DNA of 64,000 bases from Calcarisporiella thermophila CBS 279.70. Its lineage: Eukaryota > Fungi > Calcarisporiellomycota. Under the pieces are notes generated by a model. That model worked only from the letters and a program-made list of their open reading frames with translations, was not told where the DNA came from and did no database searches. The stretch covers positions 514,662 to 578,661 of the forward strand of contig NW_027192210.1 of assembly GCF_041956535.1 (NCBI RefSeq), read 5' to 3'. A program made the translations under genes and the position numbers. Of this stretch, positions 9,279 to 49,837 are shown in pieces. Every line of letters starts with the position of its first letter. Within the stretch, counting starts at the first letter, position 1.

Positions 9279-11058
9279 CTAGAGGGCTAAATCCCTTAGA
9301 AATTGGCGCATCTCCTGAAGTTCTTCAATTCCAGACTCATCAAGCACGTGTTGATATTTGGCGAGTGTCTCTTCAACTTCTGCTAGCGCTTCCGAGTGCT
9401 GTCCACTGAAAGGAATCAAGAGGGGGTCGTAAATAGATTGGATAATGAGCAGAAAAAGCAAAATAAAATCACCTATTAAAGAGCAACGAGCATAGCTTGA
9501 TCTTTTCGTTCGCAAGCTCCACTCCTTCTCCATATACCCTCTGCACAATCTCTAAGGATTTCCTGCATTTTTCCACTGCTTGGGTATATTGCCCCATATA
9601 TGCTAGCACTTGTGCCATTCTGTCATAAGTCATACCGATTAGCCGGCACTGCGGGTGGTATACACGCAATTGAACCTCAAGAAGTTTATTCAATTTTGAC
9701 ATGGCAGGATCAAAGGAAATATCCTGGATCAGTGATTGAATTTGGTGCATAAGAGCCTGTCTTTGAACAAGATTTACGGGCGTGGCACAACGGGAGCAGA
9801 GGGCATCCTGTTCTGACAGAAAATTGGAACATGCGGAATCGGAGCAACGGTATACGTATTCTAATGGATTTTGCTCACTATTTGTCGTTAGGAGAGCTTA
9901 GTAAGATTCAGATAAGCACATGAAAAGTACCTGTTTTGGCAAGATTCGCACTCGCAATCGAAGAAATAGTTCTCTCTTAATATTCTTTTACGCTGTTCGG
10001 TGCGCTGTTTTCCTACTAGTGGCCCATAACTGATACACACCGGCTCACCCTCTTTAACTTCCCGTGCCACTATCACTTTCAACACGAGAGAGTTCTCCAC
10101 ATGCTCAAACTTGACTATGGAATTTGGACTACAATCATGGTTTATCCGACTCGCTACCAGATAAAGCCCCAGCCCGATCGAGGTAGAAGTGAATTCGACG
10201 GTGTTTCCTTCTCGAACCACGGTAGATTCAGATTTATCCCCTTGGATTTTGAAGGCATTGCATCTGACTTTGGCAAGCATGTGCATGAGCTCCAGAAGAG
10301 CCTCGTCGGGAAGTCCAAAGGTGATTGCGAGGATAGAAGCAGTTATTGCATATTGGGAAACTAGGGCAGGAGGCTGCGCATCCAAGTGGTGGACAAGTGT
10401 GTTAAACCCGTATTTATCTGCAACAAAAATGTTAGCATAAGTTTGGTTACTTTCAAGAAAGGGCGACCAGCTGTTATATATTGGGTCATTTACCATTCAA
10501 ATAATCAGGAGCACCATGCTTCTGCATAAAGTATGCCTTTACAGCCATTTCGGTAATCTCTCCAAATTTCGCTGATAAACCTTTAAGTCCGCATACAAAT
10601 CTGTGTCCTCCACGGTCATTGTCGAAACACTCTTTTCCACAAAACCATACTTCATTGCATTCTGCACATTTGATTCGTTTGACATCCTTATCGCCCAGCA
10701 CAGCAAGACACGCTTCGCACCGCGCATTTTTCAATTCTAATTTTAACGCATGCGTAAAAGGTAATTCTTCGAGCACAACTGCACCAGCAGAAAGACTCCG
10801 GGTAGCAACAAGATAATTCCCTGCCTTTGAGGAAGACGTGAGAGTCATATCTCGGGGAGGTGTAAAGATGTCATTTGGTCGAGTTAGAGGTTGAGAGATA
10901 CGACGACGCGCTGGAGCATTTGACCATTCAGAGAGAAAGGATCGCAATGAAGGAGATTTCTGTACATAGGCACGTACACGTGCTCGTTCCTGTGCAGATT
11001 CAGCGAAGTTTGGATTAATTCTGAGAGAGTCAAACCATTCTGTACGCAACAGAGACAT
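9279..11058 (-). CDS. SET and MYND domain lysine methyltransferase (SMYD family)
   Basis: GNYLVATR, MYND CEAC...CAECNEVWFCGKEC...HRFVC, SET ASRINHDCSPN, ISYG, post-SET YFFDCECESC, C-terminal TPR-like helices. Confidence 0.9.
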
Positions 11059-15576: not shown

Positions 15577-16876
15577 ATGGCATCCAAACTATCCCAGTCA
15601 AGCAACCAAAATTCGTCTCAGGCGAAGCCCACGGCCGACGAGCAATATGGAACTCACATTCGGCCCACCATGTCCACTCTTAGAAAATGGAGAAAGAAGA
15701 CGCCAAGGCCAATAAAGTGCGTAGAGATTGTCTTTTTCATATTTTCATAGATGCAGAAAATAACAGGGTATTGCTCTACCTATTATTCAACATAGCTGTT
15801 TTATGGCTTACCGCATGGACAAGCACCACGAAATTCTGGCCAAATATCCAGGGATGAACAACAAAGAGATCAGCCGACTAGTTGGTGAAATGTGGCGCGT
15901 GGAACCCGAAGAAGTGAAGACGGAATACCGCAGGCGTGCAGAAGAGTCGAAAAGATTGCACAAACTGAATTTTCCCGAGTATCAGTACCGACCAAAGAAG
16001 AAATCGGATGTTCAACGGACTGCACTGAATTCTCGAGAAATTTCGAACAGGACTTTGGAACAACCGGAGTCTTACACCGAAAGCAAAAGGGTGCTTCATG
16101 GGGGAATAGGAAAGAGAAAAATAGAAAGAACTTTACTATGGAGGAAGACCCATGAACAGTGGGTATCAAAAAGAGTCACGGGTATTGAGGAGCCTGAGGT
16201 GGGCTTGAAACTGCCGATAGCGATGCGTATGAGAGGATCGAGCTCGGGAGCTGAATGGGGAAGATTGCACAATTCCACAGTCTCAACCACGAAAAGTGGC
16301 CTGTCTACAGGGGATGTTCAAACTGATATCTCTAACCTCTCACTCAGGCCTTCATATCAACTCTGTGGTGGTGCAAACGGAATCACAAGCTGTGGCAGCG
16401 ATTATATAGGCATGATACCGCTGCCAATTCAAATTACGCATTCGTTACCAGAGTTTTTCTATAGTTCGAATAGCTATAATGAAATGGAATCGAGGTTATC
16501 TCACATTGTCGACAAGCATAGAAATCTTCCCCACTGGCTGTCCGAGTTACAGAGAGGAGTATCGCATTCTGAACCACCGCCTACGCTACTAGATTTTGAG
16601 CATCAACCCACAGCCACGACTTGGACCCGAGCTAGTACAACCTTTAACACTGCACATGGGTTGTATAATTGGGATATATCCTTTCCACCTTTTAACGAAG
16701 AATTCCTGCTCGATTCGAGTCCAATGTGCCATCATTCTTACACCTCTTTTATAGAGAACTTTTCTTCGGAATTATCTGGAGAGTATAAGGAGGCCCTTCT
16801 AGAGACTGAATTTTTCTCACCTGAAGAGTATCAACAAAAGCAATTCGAGTTGAGCTTTGAAGGAACACTGGGTTGA
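15577..16876 (+). CDS. MATA-class HMG-box transcription factor (SexM/SexP/MAT1-2/Rox1-like)
   Basis: Exon 1 15577-15716, intron 15717-15795, giving RKKTPRPIN|CFMAYRMDKHHEILAKYPGMNNKEISRLVGEMWRVEPEEVKTEYRRRAEESKRLHKLNFPEYQYRPKKK; acidic/aromatic C-terminal tail. Confidence 0.9.
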
Positions 16877-27163: not shown

Positions 27164-30100
27164 CTAGAAGGGGGCAGCACACACCGGCCACAACTTCAAT
27201 TCCCATCCGGCCAGGTATTTTTCCCATGGCTTCCAACCCAATTCGCTCACCAGCTCACGCTTCATCTTCCAAGCTTTCTTCGCATCTGCCAGCGCCGAAC
27301 CACTCACCTCCACGTCTGCCAAGAACTTGTTCAGCGCCTTTAGGACATTTCCGTAGCGGAGTGCACGTCGTTCGCGCTCAAGATAGGGTAGGAGGGCCTG
27401 CCAATCTGCAGAGGAAGGAGGTAGATCGGTCCACTGGCAGAGGAGACGGTATGTTGCCTCGAGTTCTTCGGCCTCTTTCCTCTCACCCTCTTGCTGATCG
27501 GTGCCTTTCTGGCAGAGATAGGAGAGAGCACGATGACGACCCCGCAGTCCCGCAATAATCGCGTCTCGTCGTTTCTCCATCTCTTTCCTCTTGTTCTTCA
27601 CCTCTTTACTCTCCTCCGCCCCAGAAGATTTGATCCCAAGGAACGCGGCAACTTCGTCGGGTGGACCAGCTTTTTCCACCACCATAGAGGCCGCCTTCTC
27701 TGCTCTCCTCGCGGTTTCCTCGGAGGGTGAGGCCTCGAACACTTCGAGGGCGACGTCAAGGTTGGTCATCAGTAGTGGGAGGTGGGTTGGATCGGAGTTG
27801 AGCAGGTCGGTGAGTAAAGCTTGTTGAGCCTCTCGATCGGAGGACAACTTCTTTGCATGGGCGATCTTCGCGTCCCTCACGGCATCGTTCAAGGCCTTTG
27901 CAGGGTCCTCCTTCTCCTTCTCGCCGCCCCGTCCTCCCTCGTCTGAGGGCTCTTTTGCCTTGATCGGCTCGGGTGGTACAACCCATCCGACCCGATATTC
28001 TCCACCTTCAATTTTACCTCCGCTACTACCCACTAATTCCATCCGTCCACACAACATATCTCCCAGTTTGGCGTCCTTAGGCAGAGACGACCAGTCATTC
28101 GGCGCAGCAAAATAAACGGGCACACGAGAGCCCCTATCAAGTGCGCGTTTACCGAAGGTGCCGCTTGAAGCGGTAAATGCCCCTTGGACGTAGGAGTGGG
28201 CATCTAGAGACAACGAGCGAGGTAGATTAGAGTCCAGCAGGCACACCAACGACTTCAGCTTCTCTAACATATCCTCGACCTCTGAGGTCAACTGCATCCT
28301 CAGTGTGTATTCTCCTTTCTTTGGTAGCTTGATATTACGAGGATAAATATCCAGATAACCCATCACTTGCCCACCCGCGTCAGTCAGGATACCAAACACG
28401 CCGCGCAAGAAGTGATCATACATGCGATCTTGGATGGCTGGGAATCGTGCGGTTACTTGAGTATTGGGCTCACTAGTCCTGAAGGTATAAGTCAGGACAA
28501 GGCCATATGCTTGTCGCGTAGTGGGTAGGACGTCACGCTCCTTGCTGAGTGGGCGAATGCTGGCGTCACTCGGCCGAATGGCACGCCGCAACACATCCAG
28601 CGTTATGCTAGGGTTGACATTTTCTTCAAAGCGCACTCTCGGTTCAACGTCGATGCGCGTGACCCCATCCCCGCCATTCAGTAAGATCCGGCCCTCTCCC
28701 CCTGCCGCACCGCCTGCCTGAGCCGCGATGACTTGCACCCCTCCGAAGGACAAGTCAACATCCAGTGTGTGCTCTCCAGGAGAAGACCAAAACTGGGCCA
28801 GGCAAATTTCTACCACAGTGTTGGATTGGAGTGCGAAGCGTTTCTTGTGCATATACATAGGAGAGGAAGGAGAGGCATAGGAGCCTTTTGCAAGAGTGAG
28901 CTCATAGGAAGTCTCGGTGTGAGTGAATCTATACACCACGTTAATAAAAGAATAATAGATGAGTCAGCCAATTGGACCACGATGCTATTCTCGAGTCAAA
29001 TATTCACCGTGTATGGGGAACCAACTGCATTACCCGCACCCAGAGTCTGGCGGTTTCTTCCGCCTTGTCTTGCCCTTTGTGCCTCCTTCCATCATTTCTG
29101 TTCTTCACCACTAGCTCACCAAACGTCGCTCCAGCAGGCACATTCACAAACTTGCGGATAATTTCTCCTGGGCCGAGTTTGACACCCTCCCATTCTACTC
29201 TGCCATCCTCTGTTTGAATGCTTTTGAGGACGGTTACCGGGAGAGTGAAAACAGGGCCACGCTCAGGGCATTTTGTGTCAAATGCCTGCACCTCTGCATA
29301 GTGCACTCCCCCGTCCGTGGGGAGGCACGTCGGGTCGACTTTTACAGGGAAATCGCGACCTGAGCTTCCCATTGCCAAGAAGTCCGGGCAGCGAACCCAA
29401 CTGGCCGTTGCGGTAAGAGCAAGTCGCATGTCCAGATCAAACTTAGTCCGGTTTGAGGTATCTGAGGCCGGGATGGCAGAATCATTGGGAGAGAGTGGGT
29501 CGAGCATGAATACGGGTTTAGCAGAGCAGGTGAGGGTCTGTATACGCGCAGCGGCATCATGTTCTCTCAGATAGATTCCTCGGTCGGATCTGGAAGGTAA
29601 ACCCTAGCAATAACCATCGGATAATATTGTCAGTCTTTAATGCTAAACTTTTGAGTGTGTTATTTTGGGTGTTGGTGCTTACCGGGCCCATGCACGTTAC
29701 GTCGAACATCATATCCAGTTCTTTATACTCCCGGAACTTCTCCAGGTACGCCCACGCCTTTTCGACTTGGATCAGACCAACCCCCATTGGGTCTCCGATA
29801 TCTTTAGTCGTCTGCACCAACGCTGCCCTGACTCGGTAGGGCGTCCAATCCATACCCTCTGCTTTCAGGGCTGAAACAAGGAGGGCGACACAGCCGGCGC
29901 AATTTGGGCTTGACATGGAAGTTCCGTTCGCAAGCTGCGACTTTTGTAGTCCATACACCGGCAAGCTCGCAATAGCACTTCCAGGAGCATACACGTCCAC
30001 ACCTTTGTACCCATCCACCGTTGGACCACGTGAACTCCATGTATAAGCCTGCTCAGGAACATAGTCCAGCAGTGCATATTCAGCCTGCTGTTGGGAATAG

Positions 30101-31774
30101 CTGACGTGAGCCCCCACGGAGATCATTCCGGCCCACATTCCTGCAGGTGCTCCGATAGTACTGACACACGGTCCCTCATTGCCAGCGGAGCAGACAAAGA
30201 TGCAACCAGGCAACCGCCCGATCACTTGTGTCCGTAAAAGCTTTGCAAAATAGCCAAAGGTAGGCAGCGAGGCAGCCTCACCATAGGACATATTTGCAAC
30301 ATCACACTTGTGAGTGATGAGAGCTTCAGCGGCACGAGCGAAGCCAGTACCGGTCTCCAGTGAGCCGAGTCGCGTGTCACCAATCTTAAGGGAGACGATC
30401 TAATTCAAAATAAGCGTTTTTAGAAATATAGATTGCGCAAAAATTCAATCTCGAGGATTCACCTGAGCGCCTGGAGCCATCTAAGAGAAGCAAGATCAAG
30501 CAAACAAATAAAAAATTAATATCCAAGGCAAAATAGGAAAAGCAGATAGTTTGAATATATGTACTCCGTTTAATGCAGGCTCCTCGGGATGGCATGCAGC
30601 AACAATACTGGCAACGTGGGTTCCATGGGACCCCGCCATTGTAACAATACTTTGGAAATTAGACACAAATTAGAGCTGCTACAAGTACACGATATAAACT
30701 TTAAATCACCTGACTAAATCACCATTATCATAAATATTCACGGAGAAGCTTAGTAAATCCTGGTTTGTAAACCGACTAAACTCTCTTTCCTTTCTGAAGT
30801 CTGTCAAGGGCTTTTGTGTCCTTAGATCTCCGTTTTCCATGGTATCGACCACAACCCGCCATGTCTCGCCATCATGGAATACAACAACATCGAATACAGG
30901 CCCTGCATCATCGTAGGATTTGAGGAATTCTTTCAAAACCTCGATGCGTGCCTCAAGATCAGCCTTCTTGGTAGCGAGGGGTGAATCCGAGGGAACAGAG
31001 GGATTTGATTGCTCGAATGTGGCGAGTTCACTCCGGGCTTCAGCGAGTAGTCTATGATGCTCTATCTCGAATTTCTCACGGCGTTCCTAAAGATACAAGG
31101 TAGTAGTATTAGTGAAAACACACTAAGAGTAGTTCTCGAAAATTCTTTAATATTCACCTGAGTTAATCTCTTCACTAATGAAGAAGGGAAAAGTTCCCAC
31201 GCTCTCTTGATGCCCAGTCGATATTCGCCCGTTGGATTCTTCCACTCTGGATTAAGTGTAAGTGTGCGCCCTGACAGGCCGCTGAGTATCGGGCACGACT
31301 TGCCATCTACCTCGGCCAAAGTCGGTTTGACAATAGTGGTAGTGGTAACATCACCTTAGAAATATTAGGTGTTAAAAAGGGTCGATTGGTAAAAAAAAAA
31401 GGGAACACTTGTATTACCAGAGCCAGTACAATCAATAATGTCCAATACCTTAGGCTTTCCCTCCGTCGTCACCTGCATGCCGGCAGCAGCAGGGTCAAGT
31501 CCTAATGATATCCGAAAATGGAACACTCAATTTTCTTCGATTATCTCACTTGTAAGCTAATTGTCTTACCGGTGTCAAGAATCGCGACAACTATGCCGCG
31601 ACCATCGAAGTTAGGATGCTTTTTAATGAATGAGGACGCTTCAGTGTCCTAATATAGAGATCATTATTAATTTTGAATTTGCACTTTCCAATTGCATGCT
31701 ATTCTCACCTCCTTTGGCATTAGCCCATGCACCGGGAACTCGGGAATGGGTCCAATGCTTGTAGATTTCGTCAT
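27164..31774 (-). CDS. TPP2: Tripeptidyl peptidase II (subtilase S8)
   Basis: [23 protein letters not shown]|[36 protein letters not shown]-terminal region. Confidence 0.96.
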
Positions 31775-36173: not shown

Positions 36174-37148
36174 TTAATATGCTTTGCAATTTCCGTTGTT
36201 GCGGCGATTCTTGCTCTTCCCCTTCCCCTTGTTCTTCTTGCCCTTGTTCTTCTTGTTCTTGTTTTTGTTCTTGTTCTTGTTGCCGCATTTTCCATTCACA
36301 GAGTTGTTGCAATTGCCCTTAGCCTCGGTATTAGCATTGTTATTTTGCACTTCACTGGACTTGGAATTAATGTTGGTGTTAAGGAGAGAAATGTTGTCGA
36401 TGAGGTGGAGATTGTTGAGAGAACCATCCAAGACACGCTTATCCAGTTGCTTGATAGAGTTGTTGCCTTTTCCGCGAGCCTCTGTGTTGGCGTTGTTATT
36501 CTGCGCCTGGGAGGTCTCGGAGTTGATGAGAGTGTTGAGGGCGGAGATTTGGTCGAGGATGTGAGCATTGTTGAGAGAGCCGTCCAAGATCCGTTTATCC
36601 AGTTGATTAATAGAGTTGTTGCCTTTGCCACGAGCCTTAGTGTTCGCGTTGTTATTTTGTGCCTCAGTGGTCTCCGAATCGACATGGACATTGCCAACCG
36701 ATATATGGTCCGCAATATGAGCGTTGTTAAGGGAACCGTCCAGAATTCGCTTATCGAACTGCTTGACAGAATTGTTGTCTTTCCCCTTGGCCTTTGTGTT
36801 TGCATTGTTGTTCTCCACGCGCTGTTGTTTCGAGTTAACCAACACATTAAGGAGGTCAATATTGCTTAATATATGGGCATTATTAAGCGAACCATCCGCA
36901 ATGCCGCGGCGACACCAGCGCTTATCGATTTGATTCAACGAGTTGTTGTTGCAGCCATCGGCGCGAGTATTAGCATTGTTGTTCTCGACCTTTTGGGTGC
37001 TGGAGCCAACAAGGGTGTTGAGGATAGAGATGTCACTTGCCACGTGCGCATTGTTTAGGGTTCCGTCGGCGATGCCTCGAGCAGAGAGGGGAGCCGCTGA
37101 AACGGAAAGTGCAAGGGAGATGAAGGTAAGGAATGAAATGTGCTTCAT
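36174..37148 (-). CDS. Secreted Kex2-processed repeat precursor with five ~52-aa Asn-rich modules and a Lys/Asn-rich tail
   Basis: Intronless; signal peptide MKHISFLTFISLALSVSA; modules (G)I/VLDGSLNNAH...NNNANTxAxGxxNNSxxQxDKR; tail GNKNKNKNKNKKNKGKKNKGKGKSKNRR. Confidence 0.88.
   Translation of the reverse strand: MKHISFLTFISLALSVSAAPLSARGIADGTLNNAHVASDISILNTLVGSSTQKVENNNANTRADGCNNNSLNQIDKRWCRRGIADGSLNNAHILSNIDLLNVLVNSKQQRVENNNANTKAKGKDNNSVKQFDKRILDGSLNNAHIADHISVGNVHVDSETTEAQNNNANTKARGKGNNSINQLDKRILDGSLNNAHILDQISALNTLINSETSQAQNNNANTEARGKGNNSIKQLDKRVLDGSLNNLHLIDNISLLNTNINSKSSEVQNNNANTEAKGNCNNSVNGKCGNKNKNKNKNKKNKGKKNKGKGKSKNRRNNGNCKAY
36297..37076 (-). repeat. Coding tandem repeat, 5 units of about 156 nt
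   Basis: Units 1-4 end in DKR; units 3 and 4 are the most similar. Confidence 0.9.
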
Positions 37149-37928
37149 GTTTGTGTGAGGTCGGCTAGAAGAAATGTGTTGTAAGTGGTAAGGAGTGTGG
37201 TGGAAAAGTGAGGTGAGAGAGGAGGGGAGGGATGTGTTGGCGCAAAATGAATCGGATGGGGAAAGGGCAGATGTGAGGAGAATGCGCTGCCCATGCTTCC
37301 ATGCGTGTTATTTATAACCACGCGGGCTCAAACCTCTGCAAACCCTCAGTTTCCGGTTCCCACTATTTTTAGCCTGTTGCTAAGAACTAAAGACAACATC
37401 AATAGGATTACGCAAAGGAACAGGTTCCCTTGCAATCAATCCAATTTCTGAGGCTCTTAGCATTAATATAGTCAAATATAGTCGTCCATTTGACGAATGG
37501 CCGGACATTTTATTATAGTCGGAGGTAGGTTTTGTGATCCACTGCCCGCGGCAATTTAGGTCTGTTTCACGCAAAAGCCTGGGTCAATTCTTCTATCATC
37601 CACTGATCCTTTCTCAGCTAATGCGAGCATGCATGGTTGAATGGAGGGAGCGCGATTAAAAACGACGAAAACAATGAAAAATATCTTGCAGCGATTCATT
37701 GTCCTTCCGGGCACAACATCAATGAGCGGGCGAAGGGACGCCTATGCCTTATTCTGATGTTATTGCGCTCGACACCCGCAACTGAGACGGTCTCTCTCCG
37801 ACCATGACTATGGGAGTCGTACAGCTCCCCTTAAGCGATGATCTGAATGTGCCGGCCAGGCGGCAAAGGCGGGCATATTCTCCTGTAGATCGCTTTTGAC
37901 TTTGGGGAAACTTGGAGAAGACAATCTC

Positions 37929-39200: not shown

Positions 39201-41408
39201 ATGTTCCGATTATATCCACGCACGTTTCCCCTGTCATCTTCCCGAACATTATTAAGGCGATATGCAGGTACAACAAAACACATCATCAGATCTAAGCAAT
39301 CCCCTTCCACATCTCCCTCCACATCCCCTTCATCCTTCACACCCATCTACTCTCGCCATTACCAGCCCACTACAGACGAAGTCCGCTCGTTTCTAGATAG
39401 GCATCAACAGTTTCCCCGGCCGCTGAAAGGGACGACAGAGGAGGCACTCGTTCCGTGTCCACACTGCCCGCCAAAGCCGCGAGCAAGTCGATATACAGCT
39501 CGCATCCATCTTCGAACAGGACAATACCAGTGTCCATCCTGTTTATCACGCGGAACTTGGAGCGATTTTGTGAGTGCCGTGGCAAAGCCTTCGTTCGCCA
39601 TTCTTGATGCCACATTGAAAGATGCGGGAGGTCAAAGAGGTGCTGGTAATGAGATAAGTTTCTCTAGGCCGATCTCTGAGATTGAAGCATACCCTGAACA
39701 GCTAAATGAGTATCCGGCTGTACGGGACTGGATGATCGAGATCGGGATTAGGGAAGAAACACTGCAAAAATTTGGTGTTGGAGTGGCGAAGTATGCGTCA
39801 CTGGAGACGAAGTTGGCTGCACATGGAAAGGAGCTAGAGGCCCAAATAGAAGGGGAAATATGTGTCACATTTCCAATGATGGGTCCGGATTTCGGCAAGT
39901 CCAATAATGAAAAGGCCGCCACCGACAATACCAAGCCAGCCGAAGATGCGGCGAAGCCTGCAGAAACAGATCTCGCCACCATCGAGTATCGAACTGTACG
40001 CATCAAAGCGGTCCGTCCGGGAACATCTGAGCTCATCGCTTTTGACCCCGCCACTCGAGCTAAATCTGACGTCCCTTGTCTGTTTGGATACCATTTACTG
40101 CACCCAAACACAGAGGAGATCATCCTTACTGCCAATGAGCTTGACTGCATGGCGGCGTTCCAGGAAACTCGCGTGCCTTCCGTCTCGCTTCCGAGCTTAA
40201 ACCAGCTGCCCGTCGAGGTCGTGCCGCTTCTAGAGCGCTTCTCCAAGATCTACTTGTGGCTCGAGGACGATGTGAATGGGAGATCTGCTGCGGAAAAATT
40301 TGTGAGGAAATTGGGTATACACAGGTGTCGCATCGTGAGTACCCGGGGAGATTCGATTGACGGACCCCGAAGCGCACACGAGGCCTTGGCTCGCGGAAGC
40401 AACCTACGGAAACTGTTATCCGAAGCGAAGCCGCTGGGCCATGATCAAATCATCGACTTTTCGGACCTCCGTGACGCTGTCTACAGAGAAGTGTTGCACC
40501 CGGACCAAGTGTGCGGCACTCCTTTCCGCGATTTTCCCGCACTCACGAATCTCCTTAAAGGGCATCGGCCCGGCGAGCTGACCGTGTTCACGGGGCGAAC
40601 GGGCATAGGAAAGACAACCACGCTTTGCCAGCTCTCGCTTGATATTGCTCGACAAGGGATCCCGACCCTGTGGGGTAGCTTCGAGATACCCAACGTACGG
40701 CTGGCGAAGAAGCTGCTGATGCAGTTGGCGGAGCGCGATTTATCGACCGTGCCGGAGGAGTTTGACGTATGGGCCAATGAACTCCAGAGAGTAAGGATAG
40801 GGCGATGCTTCACTAGGATTAGATGGAACACAGTTCAACTCTAACAATTCAACTCCTTCACACCCCATAGATACCAATGTATTTTCTCCGATTTTTCGGA
40901 AGCACCGATATCAATACTGTCGAAGAGGCCATGCTCCACGCCCTCCATGCCTACGATGTCCAGCACGTTCTGATTGATAATCTCCAATTCATGTTGTCTG
41001 GTCAACGGCACTCCTCACTCGAGCGGTGGGAGCTTCAGGATGAGGTGCTCGCGCGGTTCCGCCAGTTTGCCACCCAGCAAAATGTCCACGTCACTCTGGT
41101 AGTGCACCCAAGAAAGGATGAGAATCCTGCGCTGAGCGTGAACAGCATATTCGGAAGCGCCAAGGTCACCCAGGAGGCTGATAATGTGGTCGTGATCCAG
41201 CAGGGAGAGAAGGGGGTCCGCTACTTGGAGGTGTTGAAGAACCGATTTGATGGAACGCTTGGCCGGGTGCCTTTTGTATTCGATCGAGAAAGTCTGAAGG
41301 TAAATGGGAATAAAAAATACGCCGCGGCACTCAGAATCAAACCTGGACTAACCGCTTTCTCGTCTTTAATAGATACGTGAAATTAGGGACGATAAAATCA
41401 AATATTAG
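39201..41408 (+). CDS. TWNK: Twinkle mitochondrial DNA helicase (T7 gp4-like primase-helicase)
   Basis: Mitochondrial presequence, CPHC...CPSC zinc finger, degenerate TOPRIM, GHRPGELTVFTGRTGIGKTT, LWGSFEI, IDNLQF, HVTLVVHPRK, IFGSAKVTQEADNV, KNRFDG. Confidence 0.95.
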
Positions 41409-42238: not shown

Positions 42239-45200
42239 TTAGTCAGTGCGCGACTTTTCATTCTCAGCCTCGTCTCTCTCGCTTTCTTCCTCCTCCTCCA
42301 ATTCTACGCTTCTTGCTCGCCGTAAAGCTTCACCTTCACCCATCTCCTTCACCTTTCTTACCAGCTCCAATGGGCTCGCCGATTTATAGCTGGCGTCATC
42401 CTCTTCCTCCTCCTCGTCCGCAATGACAAAGTCCGAGGTGTTCACCGTGAGTTCGGGATTGCGTGCCATCGACATTTCATAGGGCTGAGTCAATGGGCGC
42501 GAGGTGGTGTCATCCTCTTCGGCCTCGCCAATTGAAAATGCTGCTCGCAGAGGCTCAGGCTCCTTTTCATCTACCGCCCCAAGCCCTTGTGCGTCTCGAT
42601 AGTGCTCGAGTGCTGCTGCAATCCGATCATTCACAGACAAGAGCTGATTCAACACCGCCTCCTCGCCCCCGTTACATTCCCGAATATGAGCACGGACACG
42701 GTCCAAGAGACTCGAACATTGTGCATAGAGAACTCCCGCCTCCGTATCCGCCCCACACTCCTCCTCGCGTGCTCTGCTCTTACGCAGAAGCTCAACCAAC
42801 TCCTCAAGTTTGGCGACACTTTCTTCTGCATGTTTGATATCTCTCTCCCTCTCGTCGGCGACTCGCGGGGGCTCCTGAACTTCAGTGGACTGTTTTGGGA
42901 AATCTTTTTCCGATTTAAGGCGAGCGATCTCGGCCAATCTTTCCGTCTCACGATACGTACTTAGGGGTTGAGGGGCAGCTAGAGCGGCCCGATCCTTTCC
43001 TCCATCCCCCGCGGGGTTTTGTGCGGCCTCTGCGTTCCGGATGCACACACTTACGATCTCTCTGCTTAGTCGCGCCATGTCTTTGTGATTGGGCGGTACA
43101 TTCACATCCAAGCATGTGAGGCTCCAGTTCATCTTCACACTTACGCTGAGGGCGAGCACACCCGCCAGCTCCAGCCTAGGGTTCCCGGTCAGATCGAGGT
43201 GCTGGAGGTGTTTCGTCTCGGTGATGCTCTCAGCCAGGGCAATCGCCCCCTCGGAAGTCAGCCCCGTTTCGGCAAGGAAGAGTCCACGCAAGGATCGATT
43301 CAGGGTCAGCGCATTTTTGAGGGAGTGAATACCCTCAAGGGTGGGGGTGGACAGCGGGTTGCGATTTAAATCCAGAATCTCCAGGCTCTGGTTTCGCTTT
43401 AATGCTTCGGCAAAAAAGGTGAGTCCCTTGGAGTCGATGCGATTATCGGCGATCAGAAGCTCGCGCAGACTTCGGTTTCGCCGCAGGCTCTGTGCCACGT
43501 ATTGGACGCCGTTGGTTCGGAGATCGTTTCCGCACACATCTAGCACCTCGAGCCCACGTTTGTATGCCCTGTCTTGGGAACCGATCCCCACTGACCTCGA
43601 CGACAAGGTATCGCTGGTGGCAAGAGTGGGAGTTCCCGAGCGACTTGGAGTGTCCTCGTAATCACGTAGAATAACCCCTAACCAGACGGCACCCTGATGG
43701 GTGATTTTGTTATTCCGTAATGAAAGCGTGCGCAGCGCGGAACGACGTATAGCTGGGGCCAAAACTTCCAGGAGGGGCAGTTTGACCCCGCAGTTGTCGA
43801 GCTTGAGCGTTTCTAACCGAGAGAAAGGGGAATCTGGAAAAGAAGGGGAGGGCGAGAGAGCCTGTGCGATGAGCTGAGCAGCTTTTTTATCAAGGTATGT
43901 ATTGGAGAGGTTGAGGGAGCGAAGATTTTCAGACTATAGATTATAAAAAAAGAGTTAATAGTAAATAAAAAAAGGAATGAGACTAGAGGGGAATAAAGAA
44001 CTACTCCCGCACCTTATTCATATATATAGCGATATATTTGAAACCATCTGCCTTGATGCGGCGATTCCCAGCTAAGCTTAAAACCTCAATCTCATCCGTT
44101 AGAACCAGGCTATGTAACAAAATTCGCAAGCACTCGTTCTCTATCCCACACTCATCTAGTATTAGCTGTCGTAGTCCAAATCGTAATGTGAGCAGATCGG
44201 CGAGAGGCTCTATGACATGCCGTTCCAATGGGGCGCCGGTGAGATCAAGCTCGAGATGATCGGGTGATGTTGATGCTCTTTGGAGGCACTGGATAACACG
44301 ATCTAGGGGCGGCTCTTCGCGTTGCTTACAGGTGGTGAGATAGAAGTTGAGAGCTTCGGCAGGAGAAACGGGCGATGCAGAATCTTCGAAGCTCGGCGAT
44401 ATCGACGATGAGCCGAATCCCGGTGCCGTTCCCGGGACCGATAACGAAGAAGCTTCAAGCGAATCCTCTTCAACCGCGGTGGATGGGCTATCCTTAACGC
44501 AAGCCTGCTCCTCCATGTTGGTTGATATTGCCTTAGCATTCTCTGTTTTTGCCCCCTTATCACACTCAGCCTGGTTTAAGTGCTCCGCATCCTGATAAGC
44601 ATCACTATTCTCCTCTCTCCCCTGTTCCGGGTCTACCTCATTCGCGTAATGAGTCAACTTCTCTCCTCGTGCAAATCTGACCCGCTTTAGCTGGGAGGTA
44701 ACTAGTGGATCTGTTTGCTGGTGACTGGACAAGCTACCCGTGCCACCAACCGGTGGCACCAATCCTGTATTCCTGGCCCCTCCTCCTTCAACCCCAGGCA
44801 CCACATCGCCTCCTTGTCGGTCGTCGTTGGAAGCTGTATGGTTTAATTTCTTCAACGCATTGGATAAAAATGACGACTGCGCACCTGAAGCGCCGCTATG
44901 TTGTGTGTTGATATTGGTATGAGAGGCGGGTTGTAAGGCGCCATTGAGCTTTGCATTTAGACTGGAAAACCAATCGCGTTTGAATACGGCGGTAGCCCGA
45001 TTAGTGATTTGGGGAGAAGACTTGAGAATACCCTTTTTGGGTGCGGAATATTTAGAAGAGGCCTTGTCGTGATTCATAGCTCTTCGCACCGTTTCTAATG
45101 AGGAAAGCAAAAAGTAAAATTAAATGAATGACTCCGTTCAAGAGTCGAAATTAGAATAGTTTTGCCACCCCGCATTCAAACTATACCAACTCAATCTCTC

Positions 45201-49387: not shown

Positions 49388-49837
49388 TCATTCCTGCGAC
49401 TCACCCTGCTGCTCCTCAACATTATTCACCTGATTCTGGTCGGGTTGCTCTTCGACATTATTCTCTTGCTTCTGGTCCGGCTGTTCCTCGATCTTCTTCT
49501 CTTGCTTCTTCTCTTGCTTCTTGCCGTGCTTCTTGCCGTGTTTCTTGCCGCGCTTTTTATCGTCCTTGCAGTCCTTTTTGCCGTGCTTCTTTTTGCCCTT
49601 ACGATGATGTTTTCCCTTCTTGTGCTTCTTCTTGTCACCGTGGCCGGGAGTGGACGAGGGCAGAGCAGTTTGGCTCGCAGAGGCGGAGGAGGAGATGGAT
49701 GAAGAGATGTCTCCGGTGGGCACGGGCAAGGCTGTCAGAACGGAGGTCTGCTCAGGCTCGGTCTCAGACTGTTCCTGAGCGATGGCAACGGCGGAGAAGG
49801 CGAGAGCAGCAAAGGCAAGGACAGTGAAGTACTTCAT
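49388..49837 (-). CDS. Small secreted protein with Ser/Thr, Lys/His-rich and Glu/Gln-rich blocks
   Basis: Signal peptide MKYFTVLAFAALAFSAVAIA; KKKHKKGKHHRKGKKKHGKK...KKHGKKHGKK; EEQPDQ repeats; intronless. Confidence 0.8.
   Translation of the reverse strand: MKYFTVLAFAALAFSAVAIAQEQSETEPEQTSVLTALPVPTGDISSSISSSASASQTALPSSTPGHGDKKKHKKGKHHRKGKKKHGKKDCKDDKKRGKKHGKKHGKKQEKKQEKKIEEQPDQKQENNVEEQPDQNQVNNVEEQQGESQE

Follow-up and report, generated by a model that had tools for sequence, protein, structure and literature searches.

The stretch of Calcarisporiella thermophila DNA that was analysed (64,000 nt, hereafter the window) contains an intronless gene on the minus strand for a predicted secreted pre-pro-polyprotein of 324 aa, and a second gene of the same family on the plus strand. 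An identical 324-aa product is among the called proteins of the database searched (P0001), and no intron is required. The features, read from the sequence unless stated otherwise, are as follows.

37311..37316, minus strand: TATAAA box approximately 165 nt upstream of the ATG, of putative function
36174..37148, minus strand: intronless gene for the 324-aa secreted pre-pro-polyprotein (from the ORF, its composition and database protein P0001)
37095..37148, minus strand: signal peptide, aa 1-18, probably cut after VSA (from hydropathy; the paralogs share the layout of a signal peptide plus a short propeptide)
37077..37094, minus strand: short propeptide, aa 19-24, with a single Arg at its end (SAR/G)
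36918..37076, minus strand: module 1, aa 25-77, with the family Gly first, Cys66 inside and a DKR end
36906..36917, minus strand: WCRR mini-spacer, aa 78-81, with Cys79
36747..36905, minus strand: module 2, aa 82-134, sharing 72% identity with P0021, a peptide with a double-Gly leader (by comparison)
36591..36746, minus strand: module 3, aa 135-186, without the N-terminal Gly
36435..36590, minus strand: module 4, aa 187-238, without the N-terminal Gly
36279..36434, minus strand: module 5, aa 239-290, with Cys280 and Cys288, followed by the tail without a preceding dibasic site
36174..36278, minus strand: Lys/Asn tail of microsatellite-like hexamer and 15-mer repeats, with RR at aa 315, Cys321 and the stop codon
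13080..14015, plus strand: second family gene, encoding a 311-aa precursor (P0016) with two modules and His-rich spacers (by profile search)

This ORF bears out the layout given in an earlier note on the same DNA, namely a signal peptide, five modules of about 52 aa, four DKR ends, a Lys/Asn tail and three Cys residues (280, 288 and 321). That description was correct and overlooked the Cys66/Cys79 pair, the single Arg before module 1 and the loss of Gly in modules 3-5. The N-terminus of the precursor is hydrophobic, with Kyte-Doolittle values of up to 2.3 for 11-mers, and a pyrimidine-rich leader with A at -3 lies between the TATAAA box and the ATG. The modules are 52-53 aa long, start at aa 25/26, 82/83, 135, 187 and 239, and show pairwise identities of 51-76%; the dibasic sites are KR at aa 76, 133, 185 and 237, and RR at aa 80 and 315. 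Tandem Repeats Finder detected a period of 156 nt in the gene (score 373). Approximately half of the codons for residues shared between modules differ, indicating that the repeats are old and have been maintained by selection. The modules contain 22% Asn, 9% Ser and 5% Gln, in agreement with the Asn/Ser/Gln-rich composition claimed before; the accompanying claim that they are free of Pro held for this precursor, whose sole Pro is aa 20, but not for the family, in which 35% of the members have Pro at module position 27. Module net charge ranges from -1 to +3, with 0-2 Cys per module, and Cys79 in the WCRR spacer is the likely disulfide partner of Cys66.

The neighbouring genes in the window, in which spliced genes were viewed as single open frames, are ordinary. 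They include a DnaB/Twinkle-like helicase (39201-41380, plus strand), a subtilase resembling tripeptidyl peptidase II (29557-31319, minus strand), an LRR-GAT protein (42239-43762, minus strand), an HMG-box protein (15803-16876, plus strand) and a MYND-finger protein (10486-11058, minus strand). No biosynthetic cluster was seen among these neighbours around the 324-aa gene. Tandem repeats with periods of 36 and 12 were also present in the window (49408-49591), probably in coding low-complexity sequence.

A module profile search of the C. thermophila genome detected 89 module copies at approximately 19-22 loci, and the nearest relatives of the 324-aa precursor are uncharacterised proteins of this same organism, which we take to belong to the Mucoromycota. 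The paralogs examined, a few of them partly N-masked, have between 1 and 12 modules behind a signal peptide, the spacers varying from one to another, and their propeptides mostly end in KR or RR, unlike the single Arg of the 324-aa precursor. Among modules with a Cys near position 42, 15 of 17 have a partner Cys in the following spacer, compared with 5 of the 72 without such a Cys, these copies being related rather than independent. The Lys/Asn tail is absent as a conserved feature among the paralogs, whose tails are acidic, His-rich, basic or missing. A role of the cationic tail as an anchor, as proposed earlier, was not upheld, the tail being specific to the 324-aa gene and built on microsatellite-like repeats.

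Many paralog spacers are poly-His, including those of the P0016 gene, which also encodes a spacer peptide (RMRMV...ATIGKR) common to other paralogs. Such spacers, the frequent His residues at module positions 11 and 15, and one bacterial copy adjoining genes for an HTH regulator and a FecCD ABC transporter could be accounted for by a metal-binding or scavenging system acting through module Asp and His residues and the His-rich spacers. This explanation is very unlikely, since the two His residues are only approximately 50% conserved, the 324-aa precursor has no His-rich spacer and the transporter link is a single case. Possible metal-binding variants are two paralogs, at L007 (G000:C14:172.3-174.1 kb) and L027 (C12:180-181.4 kb), whose modules are shortened and end in runs of His, or whose spacers are rich in Asp, Trp and His.

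KR or RR directly precedes 81 of the 89 genome modules, and a single Arg precedes three more. Six kexin P-domain matches were found in the genome, with intact catalytic motifs in the five loci examined. Based on these two observations, Kex2 processing of the polyprotein is predicted with high confidence; the Kex2-type precursor proposed in the earlier note gained strong support in silico, including that from bacterial homologs of the same mature peptide (see below). The P-domain loci are at G000:C5:1110032-1112179, C7:757755-759762, C17:258385 and C19:558104, two of them being adjoining opposite-strand pairs, and there is an apparent expansion of kexins alongside that of the polyproteins.

By its architecture, comprising a signal peptide, homologous repeats separated by KR or RR, and a kexin in the host, the 324-aa polyprotein fits the class of Kex2-processed repeat proteins (KEPs; PMC7329392). 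As far as the main text of that survey goes, Mucoromycota average 9 KEPs per strain and Calcarisporiella is not mentioned. A signal peptide followed by KR-separated repeats is also the layout of the Rep1 repellents of Ustilago maydis, which are processed into peptides of 34-53 aa; these are amyloid and were proposed to form a surface film on aerial hyphae (PMC3133707). The two systems differ in that amyloid has been demonstrated for Rep1, whereas the module family, here known from its genes, has bacterial and plant homologs and comprises approximately 20 genes in C. thermophila. No Ustilago or Ustilaginomycotina protein was among the named matches of our homolog searches. Dikaritin precursors are accompanied by a UstYa/DUF3328 gene; none was found in the C. 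thermophila genome by a search that gave none in the control genomes either, so the 324-aa polyprotein may not be of this kind.

Three intronless genes for 8-Cys hydrophobins (PF01185 above cut-off) were detected in the genome, at G000:C25:89122-89352, C18:373349-373579 and C18:374809-375051 (L073, L074). Hydrophobins are rare in Mucoromycota, having been found in 1 of 5 genomes (10.1101/2022.08.19.504535), and the C25 copy (E 4e-21) could have been acquired from Dikarya by transfer. Given their presence, a reading of the peptides as a stand-in for absent hydrophobins is not supported; the peptides would supplement them, not replace them. Membership of the module itself in the hydrophobins was rejected, as it lacks the eight-Cys pattern and gave no PF01185 match.

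No significant match for the 324-aa protein, its paralogs or the modules was found in Pfam or NCBIfam, and a PDB sequence search gave no match either. ESM Atlas gave no usable match for the full 324-aa protein. Among its named clusters, the nearest were rodlin (0.81) and chaplin (0.78), at lead level only. A literature search for module motifs and keywords found no paper on the module family. The short HILDxI motif of the module resembles the C-terminus of rodlins, of which a loose echo had been noted before; kinship was rejected, since hhalign gave a probability of 2.9% over 10 columns, no HMM match was obtained and rodlins scored at most 9 bits on the module HMM, which is the level of shuffled sequences. 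Chaplin membership was rejected as well, with no Pfam match for 45 modules or for P0133, despite the UniRef label DUF320 of the latter.

The module HMM, searched across fungi and bacteria as the earlier note had proposed, detected homologs in both and also in plants; the note itself had overlooked these bacterial, plant and other fungal relatives. Profile searches yielded 58 clusters at 50% identity and 120 proteins at 90%. The named bacterial hosts include many Streptomyces, Kribbella, Nocardia, Kitasatospora, Saccharothrix, Actinokineospora and Catenulispora; the other named fungal hosts include the nematode-trapping Orbiliaceae Orbilia oligospora and Dactylella cylindrospora, with a partial match in Crucibulum; and the plant hosts are Stipagrostis hirtigluma and Papaver nudicaule. 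Conservation extends over all of the approximately 47 module residues, and Asp4 is invariant. With an HMM built from fungal modules only, real members scored a median of 57 bits (minimum 20), far above shuffles (at most 11) and reversals (at most 5), indicating that the homology is not compositional. On these comparisons, the module is an unannotated cross-kingdom peptide family.

Eight Streptomyces loci were obtained from a GTDB scan, and each complete one encodes a protein of approximately 77 aa with a signal peptide ending in AxA, followed by one module. Actinobacterial secreted peptides are up to 89% identical to fungal modules. The bacterial gene is rare, occurring in 4 of 300 further Streptomyces genomes, or about 1-2% of Streptomyces, with 0 matches in a sample of 400 other Actinomycetota genomes. 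It stands alone in variable regions with neighbours that are not conserved, copies being found also on plasmids and on two IMG/VR contigs, and no conserved enzyme, immunity or receptor gene was found beside it. Multi-module KR polyproteins were limited to C. thermophila among the homologs found, with the exception of the two-module bacterial-type P0029. In some homologs the module is fused intact, as an autonomous tag, to unrelated domains. Actinobacterial proteins with fusions to unannotated domains of approximately 90-110 aa, or with a C-terminal module, were P0100, P0105, P0107, P0108 and P0160; P0019 and P0106; and P0052. Those of these proteins that were scanned gave no Pfam match.

Among 130 members from outside Calcarisporiella, 121 start with Gly, which follows AxA (94), GG (3), xR (10), xT (11), Met (9) or the plant leaders ending in RRFL and RVLL. 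The Orbiliaceae and plant copies sit behind basic-residue sites, and the plant leader ends resemble subtilase S1P sites. Comparison of these leaders shows that each predicted processing route would free the same G-h-h-D-G N-terminus; the bacterial homologs would release the same mature peptide through signal peptidase. A lasso-peptide interpretation of the TR/G leaders was rejected, there being no Asp or Glu at positions 8-9 and no lasso enzymes nearby.

The conserved free N-terminus also fits a ligand role. A diffusible signal or mimic, bound by a receptor through the invariant G-h-h-D-G motif, would explain why four processing routes converge on one N-terminus with an invariant Asp4, and pheromones are among the established Kex2 repeat precursors. 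We regard such a role as distinctly unlikely, because conservation covers the whole module and not only its N-terminus, the Gly is gone from modules 3-5 of the 324-aa precursor, the module genes lack a linked receptor gene and a receptor common to Actinobacteria, fungi and plants is implausible.

The three members with double-glycine leaders (P0021, P0022 and P0023) are probably cyanobacterial, as judged from neighbouring genes. The P0021 gene lies between genes for an NHLP-type HlyD protein and a C39-peptidase ABC transporter, and thus matches the known double-glycine-leader peptides exported by transporters of this type; P0022 and P0023 have no adjacent transporter gene. No modifying enzyme or immunity gene was seen beside these members. 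The leader and transporter of P0021, and the patchy, accessory distribution of the family on plasmids and viral contigs, are as expected of a secreted peptide with antagonistic action, bacteriocin-like or antifungal, that owed its spread by transfer to needing no helper genes, the polyprotein serving to raise the dose. This explanation is unlikely in view of the range of net charge given above, the lack of canonical amphipathic-helix periodicity, of a conserved immunity gene and of a bacteriocin family match for the mature part, and the intactness of the module in fusions to large domains.

Low-complexity convergence or assembly contamination might in principle produce such a cross-kingdom likeness, the sequence being short and Asn-rich and the Papaver gene lying on a contig of 9.5 kb. 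This is scarcely credible: shuffles and reversals fail on the HMM, and for the fungal genes the artefact explanation is largely refuted, as these lie on contigs of 0.4-1.2 Mb among spliced fungal genes and have a GC3 of approximately 0.61, compared with 0.86-0.94 in Streptomyces. Introns in the Orbilia and Papaver genes, and a contig of 8.1 Mb around the Stipagrostis gene, indicate that most eukaryotic copies are not bacterial contamination. The plant copies (L059, 8001-8294, in Stipagrostis; L060, 1399-1782, in Papaver) are in different parts of the tree, which suggests two separate microbe-to-plant transfers.

Transfer of the peptide between kingdoms is considered highly probable from these sequences. 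On contig C9, the modules of an 860-aa paralog reach 87-89% identity to a Streptomyces peptide but do not exceed 66% to any other gene of the C. thermophila genome; for the modules of another paralog, identity to the double-Gly peptide is 77-79%. One fungal module has 43-44 of 51 residues in common with Streptomyces copies, with third codon positions saturated; this saturation and the difference in GC3 indicate that any transfer is old. Fungal and bacterial rows interleave in the tree (47 columns, simple model, no outgroup), and on the same 47 columns the AU test rejected monophyly both of the Calcarisporiella modules (p=0.0008) and of the fungi together. More than one transfer has therefore probably occurred, on trees that do not fix its direction, and convergence under shared constraint may contribute to the likeness. 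In C. thermophila, the peptide would then have been amplified into approximately 20 polyprotein genes.

The sole conserved element upstream of the Streptomyces genes was a -35/-10 pair, xGTGAC-N16-CGTTG(A/C), with the boxes 16-17 nt apart and located 6-7 nt before the start codon, implying a putative leaderless transcript. It resembles the motif recognised by sigma-BldN, CGTAAC-N16-CGTTGA (PMC2375139), a factor whose main targets are the sheath genes for chaplins and rodlins (PMC4125116). At a fixed distance from the start, all 13 Streptomyces-type genes, which are related and not independent, matched the BldN consensus at 8 or more of 12 positions and 11 did so at 9 or more, compared with 4.5% and 1.1%, respectively, of 11,605 control start codons. 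The same boxes were found before the chaplin and rodlin genes of the same genomes, in a training set seeded with the consensus. In five genomes, the pattern occurred 44 times (2-16 per genome) versus 5 for the reversed control, with the module gene among the hits in 5/5. The BldN-type promoter was absent from four non-Streptomyces module loci. ShbA recognises a similar motif with CGATGA (PMC12019637), so another ECF sigma factor is possible for the module genes.

Chaplins (PF03777) and rodlins (NF041022, PF25848) are also short, secreted and cut at AxA, and share the BldN-type promoter with the Streptomyces module homologs. They differ in distribution: chaplins were present in 5/5 and rodlins in 4/5 of the genomes tested, whereas the small share of Streptomyces carrying the module gene indicates that it does not encode a core sheath protein. 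On this promoter evidence, the Streptomyces homologs are apparently made under the switch for the aerial-hypha coat. Transposase-like genes of Streptomyces were also seen directly behind the same GTGAC-N16-CGTTG pattern (L115, L120, L124, L132, L135 and L136), and insertion sequences may be tied to a developmental ECF sigma factor. Two other small secreted Streptomyces proteins (L138, 1324-1503, minus strand; L112, 1210-1503, minus strand) have the same leaderless-type promoter, and the L138 product ends with a DGSL motif resembling the module start.

Analysis of 140 modules showed that hydrophobicity in the N-half has a period of approximately 3 residues, its periodicity being close to the lowest value at 100 degrees, the angle of an alpha-helix, and that in the C-half the alternation peaks at 180 degrees, with Asn32, Asn34 and Asn36 conserved. 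AlphaFold predicted a weak helix for a lone module (pLDDT 59) and, at low confidence, a stack of identical beta units when the five modules were linked (pLDDT 47, pTM 0.40). The nearest shapes to the latter model, all below significance, were beta-solenoids, including the CsgA fibril (Z 8.8 at an rmsd of 9.4) and FapC (E 0.013). CsgA and FapC resemble the module in their Asn-rich imperfect repeats with G-x-x-N arcs, and differ in that their repeats remain joined in a single chain and are exported by dedicated operons, whereas the Calcarisporiella repeats appear to be cut apart; no CsgA or FapC chain was found in the PDB by sequence at E values up to 10. The top VIA match of the model was an SRRP adhesin solenoid (Z 9.0). 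This match, the stacking of linked modules and a Cys66-Cys79 bond that would bridge a KR site are compatible with a precursor that stays largely uncut as one beta-solenoid adhesin or wall protein. We consider this very improbable indeed, because the dibasic sites before the modules have been retained while the spacers vary, and the bacterial form is a single module.

The best reading, and one that we moderately favour, is that the 324-aa gene encodes Kex2-released, self-assembling surface-coat peptides. It is supported indirectly by the BldN-type promoters of the Streptomyces homologs and the stacked-beta model, and further by the hydrophobic periodicity with conserved alternating Asn in the C-half, the fusion of the module as an autonomous tag and the lack of a conserved partner gene beside it. 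Counted against it are the occurrence of the promoter pattern before several transposase genes, the poor AlphaFold models and the presence of hydrophobins. According to this coat reading, the precursor would enter the ER on its signal peptide, kexin would cut after each KR or RR, and a Kex1-type carboxypeptidase would trim the basic residues, yielding five peptides of approximately 50 aa, two of which may have a C-terminal disulfide loop. By sequence, the same peptide is encoded as a single copy, each time behind a leader of its own, in Actinobacteria including Streptomyces, in probable cyanobacteria, in Orbiliaceae and in two plants. After secretion, in-register stacking of the fungal peptides would most likely give fibrils of the cross-beta or beta-solenoid type, and such fibrils could form an accessory part of the sheath on aerial hyphae or spores, acting like chaplins and the Ustilago repellents.

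A broader and more tentative proposal is that the modules form an undescribed functional-amyloid family of Actinobacteria, cyanobacteria, fungi and plants that belongs to the BldN sheath regulon, crossed between kingdoms several times and was re-fitted to signal peptidase, C39 transporter, kexin and plant subtilase, with approximately 90 variant subunits co-assembling into a coat in one early-diverging fungus. Most KEP repeats are not known to have a homolog outside fungi or a traced origin, and the literature search brought up no KEP with a repeat equal to a secreted peptide of bacteria. The module is a KEP repeat that agrees with such a peptide at either end, so that the path from one bacterial peptide gene to a family of fungal polyproteins can be traced. 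An old question also becomes testable, namely if filamentous bacteria and fungi came by their surface amyloids solely through convergence, as in chaplins, hydrophobins and repellents, or in some cases share them by transfer; the 77-aa Streptomyces gene is open to knockout in a tractable host and the 51-mer to synthesis. The module may prove to be an overlooked accessory part of the Streptomyces sheath, and may also provide a self-assembling peptide of thermophilic fungal origin.
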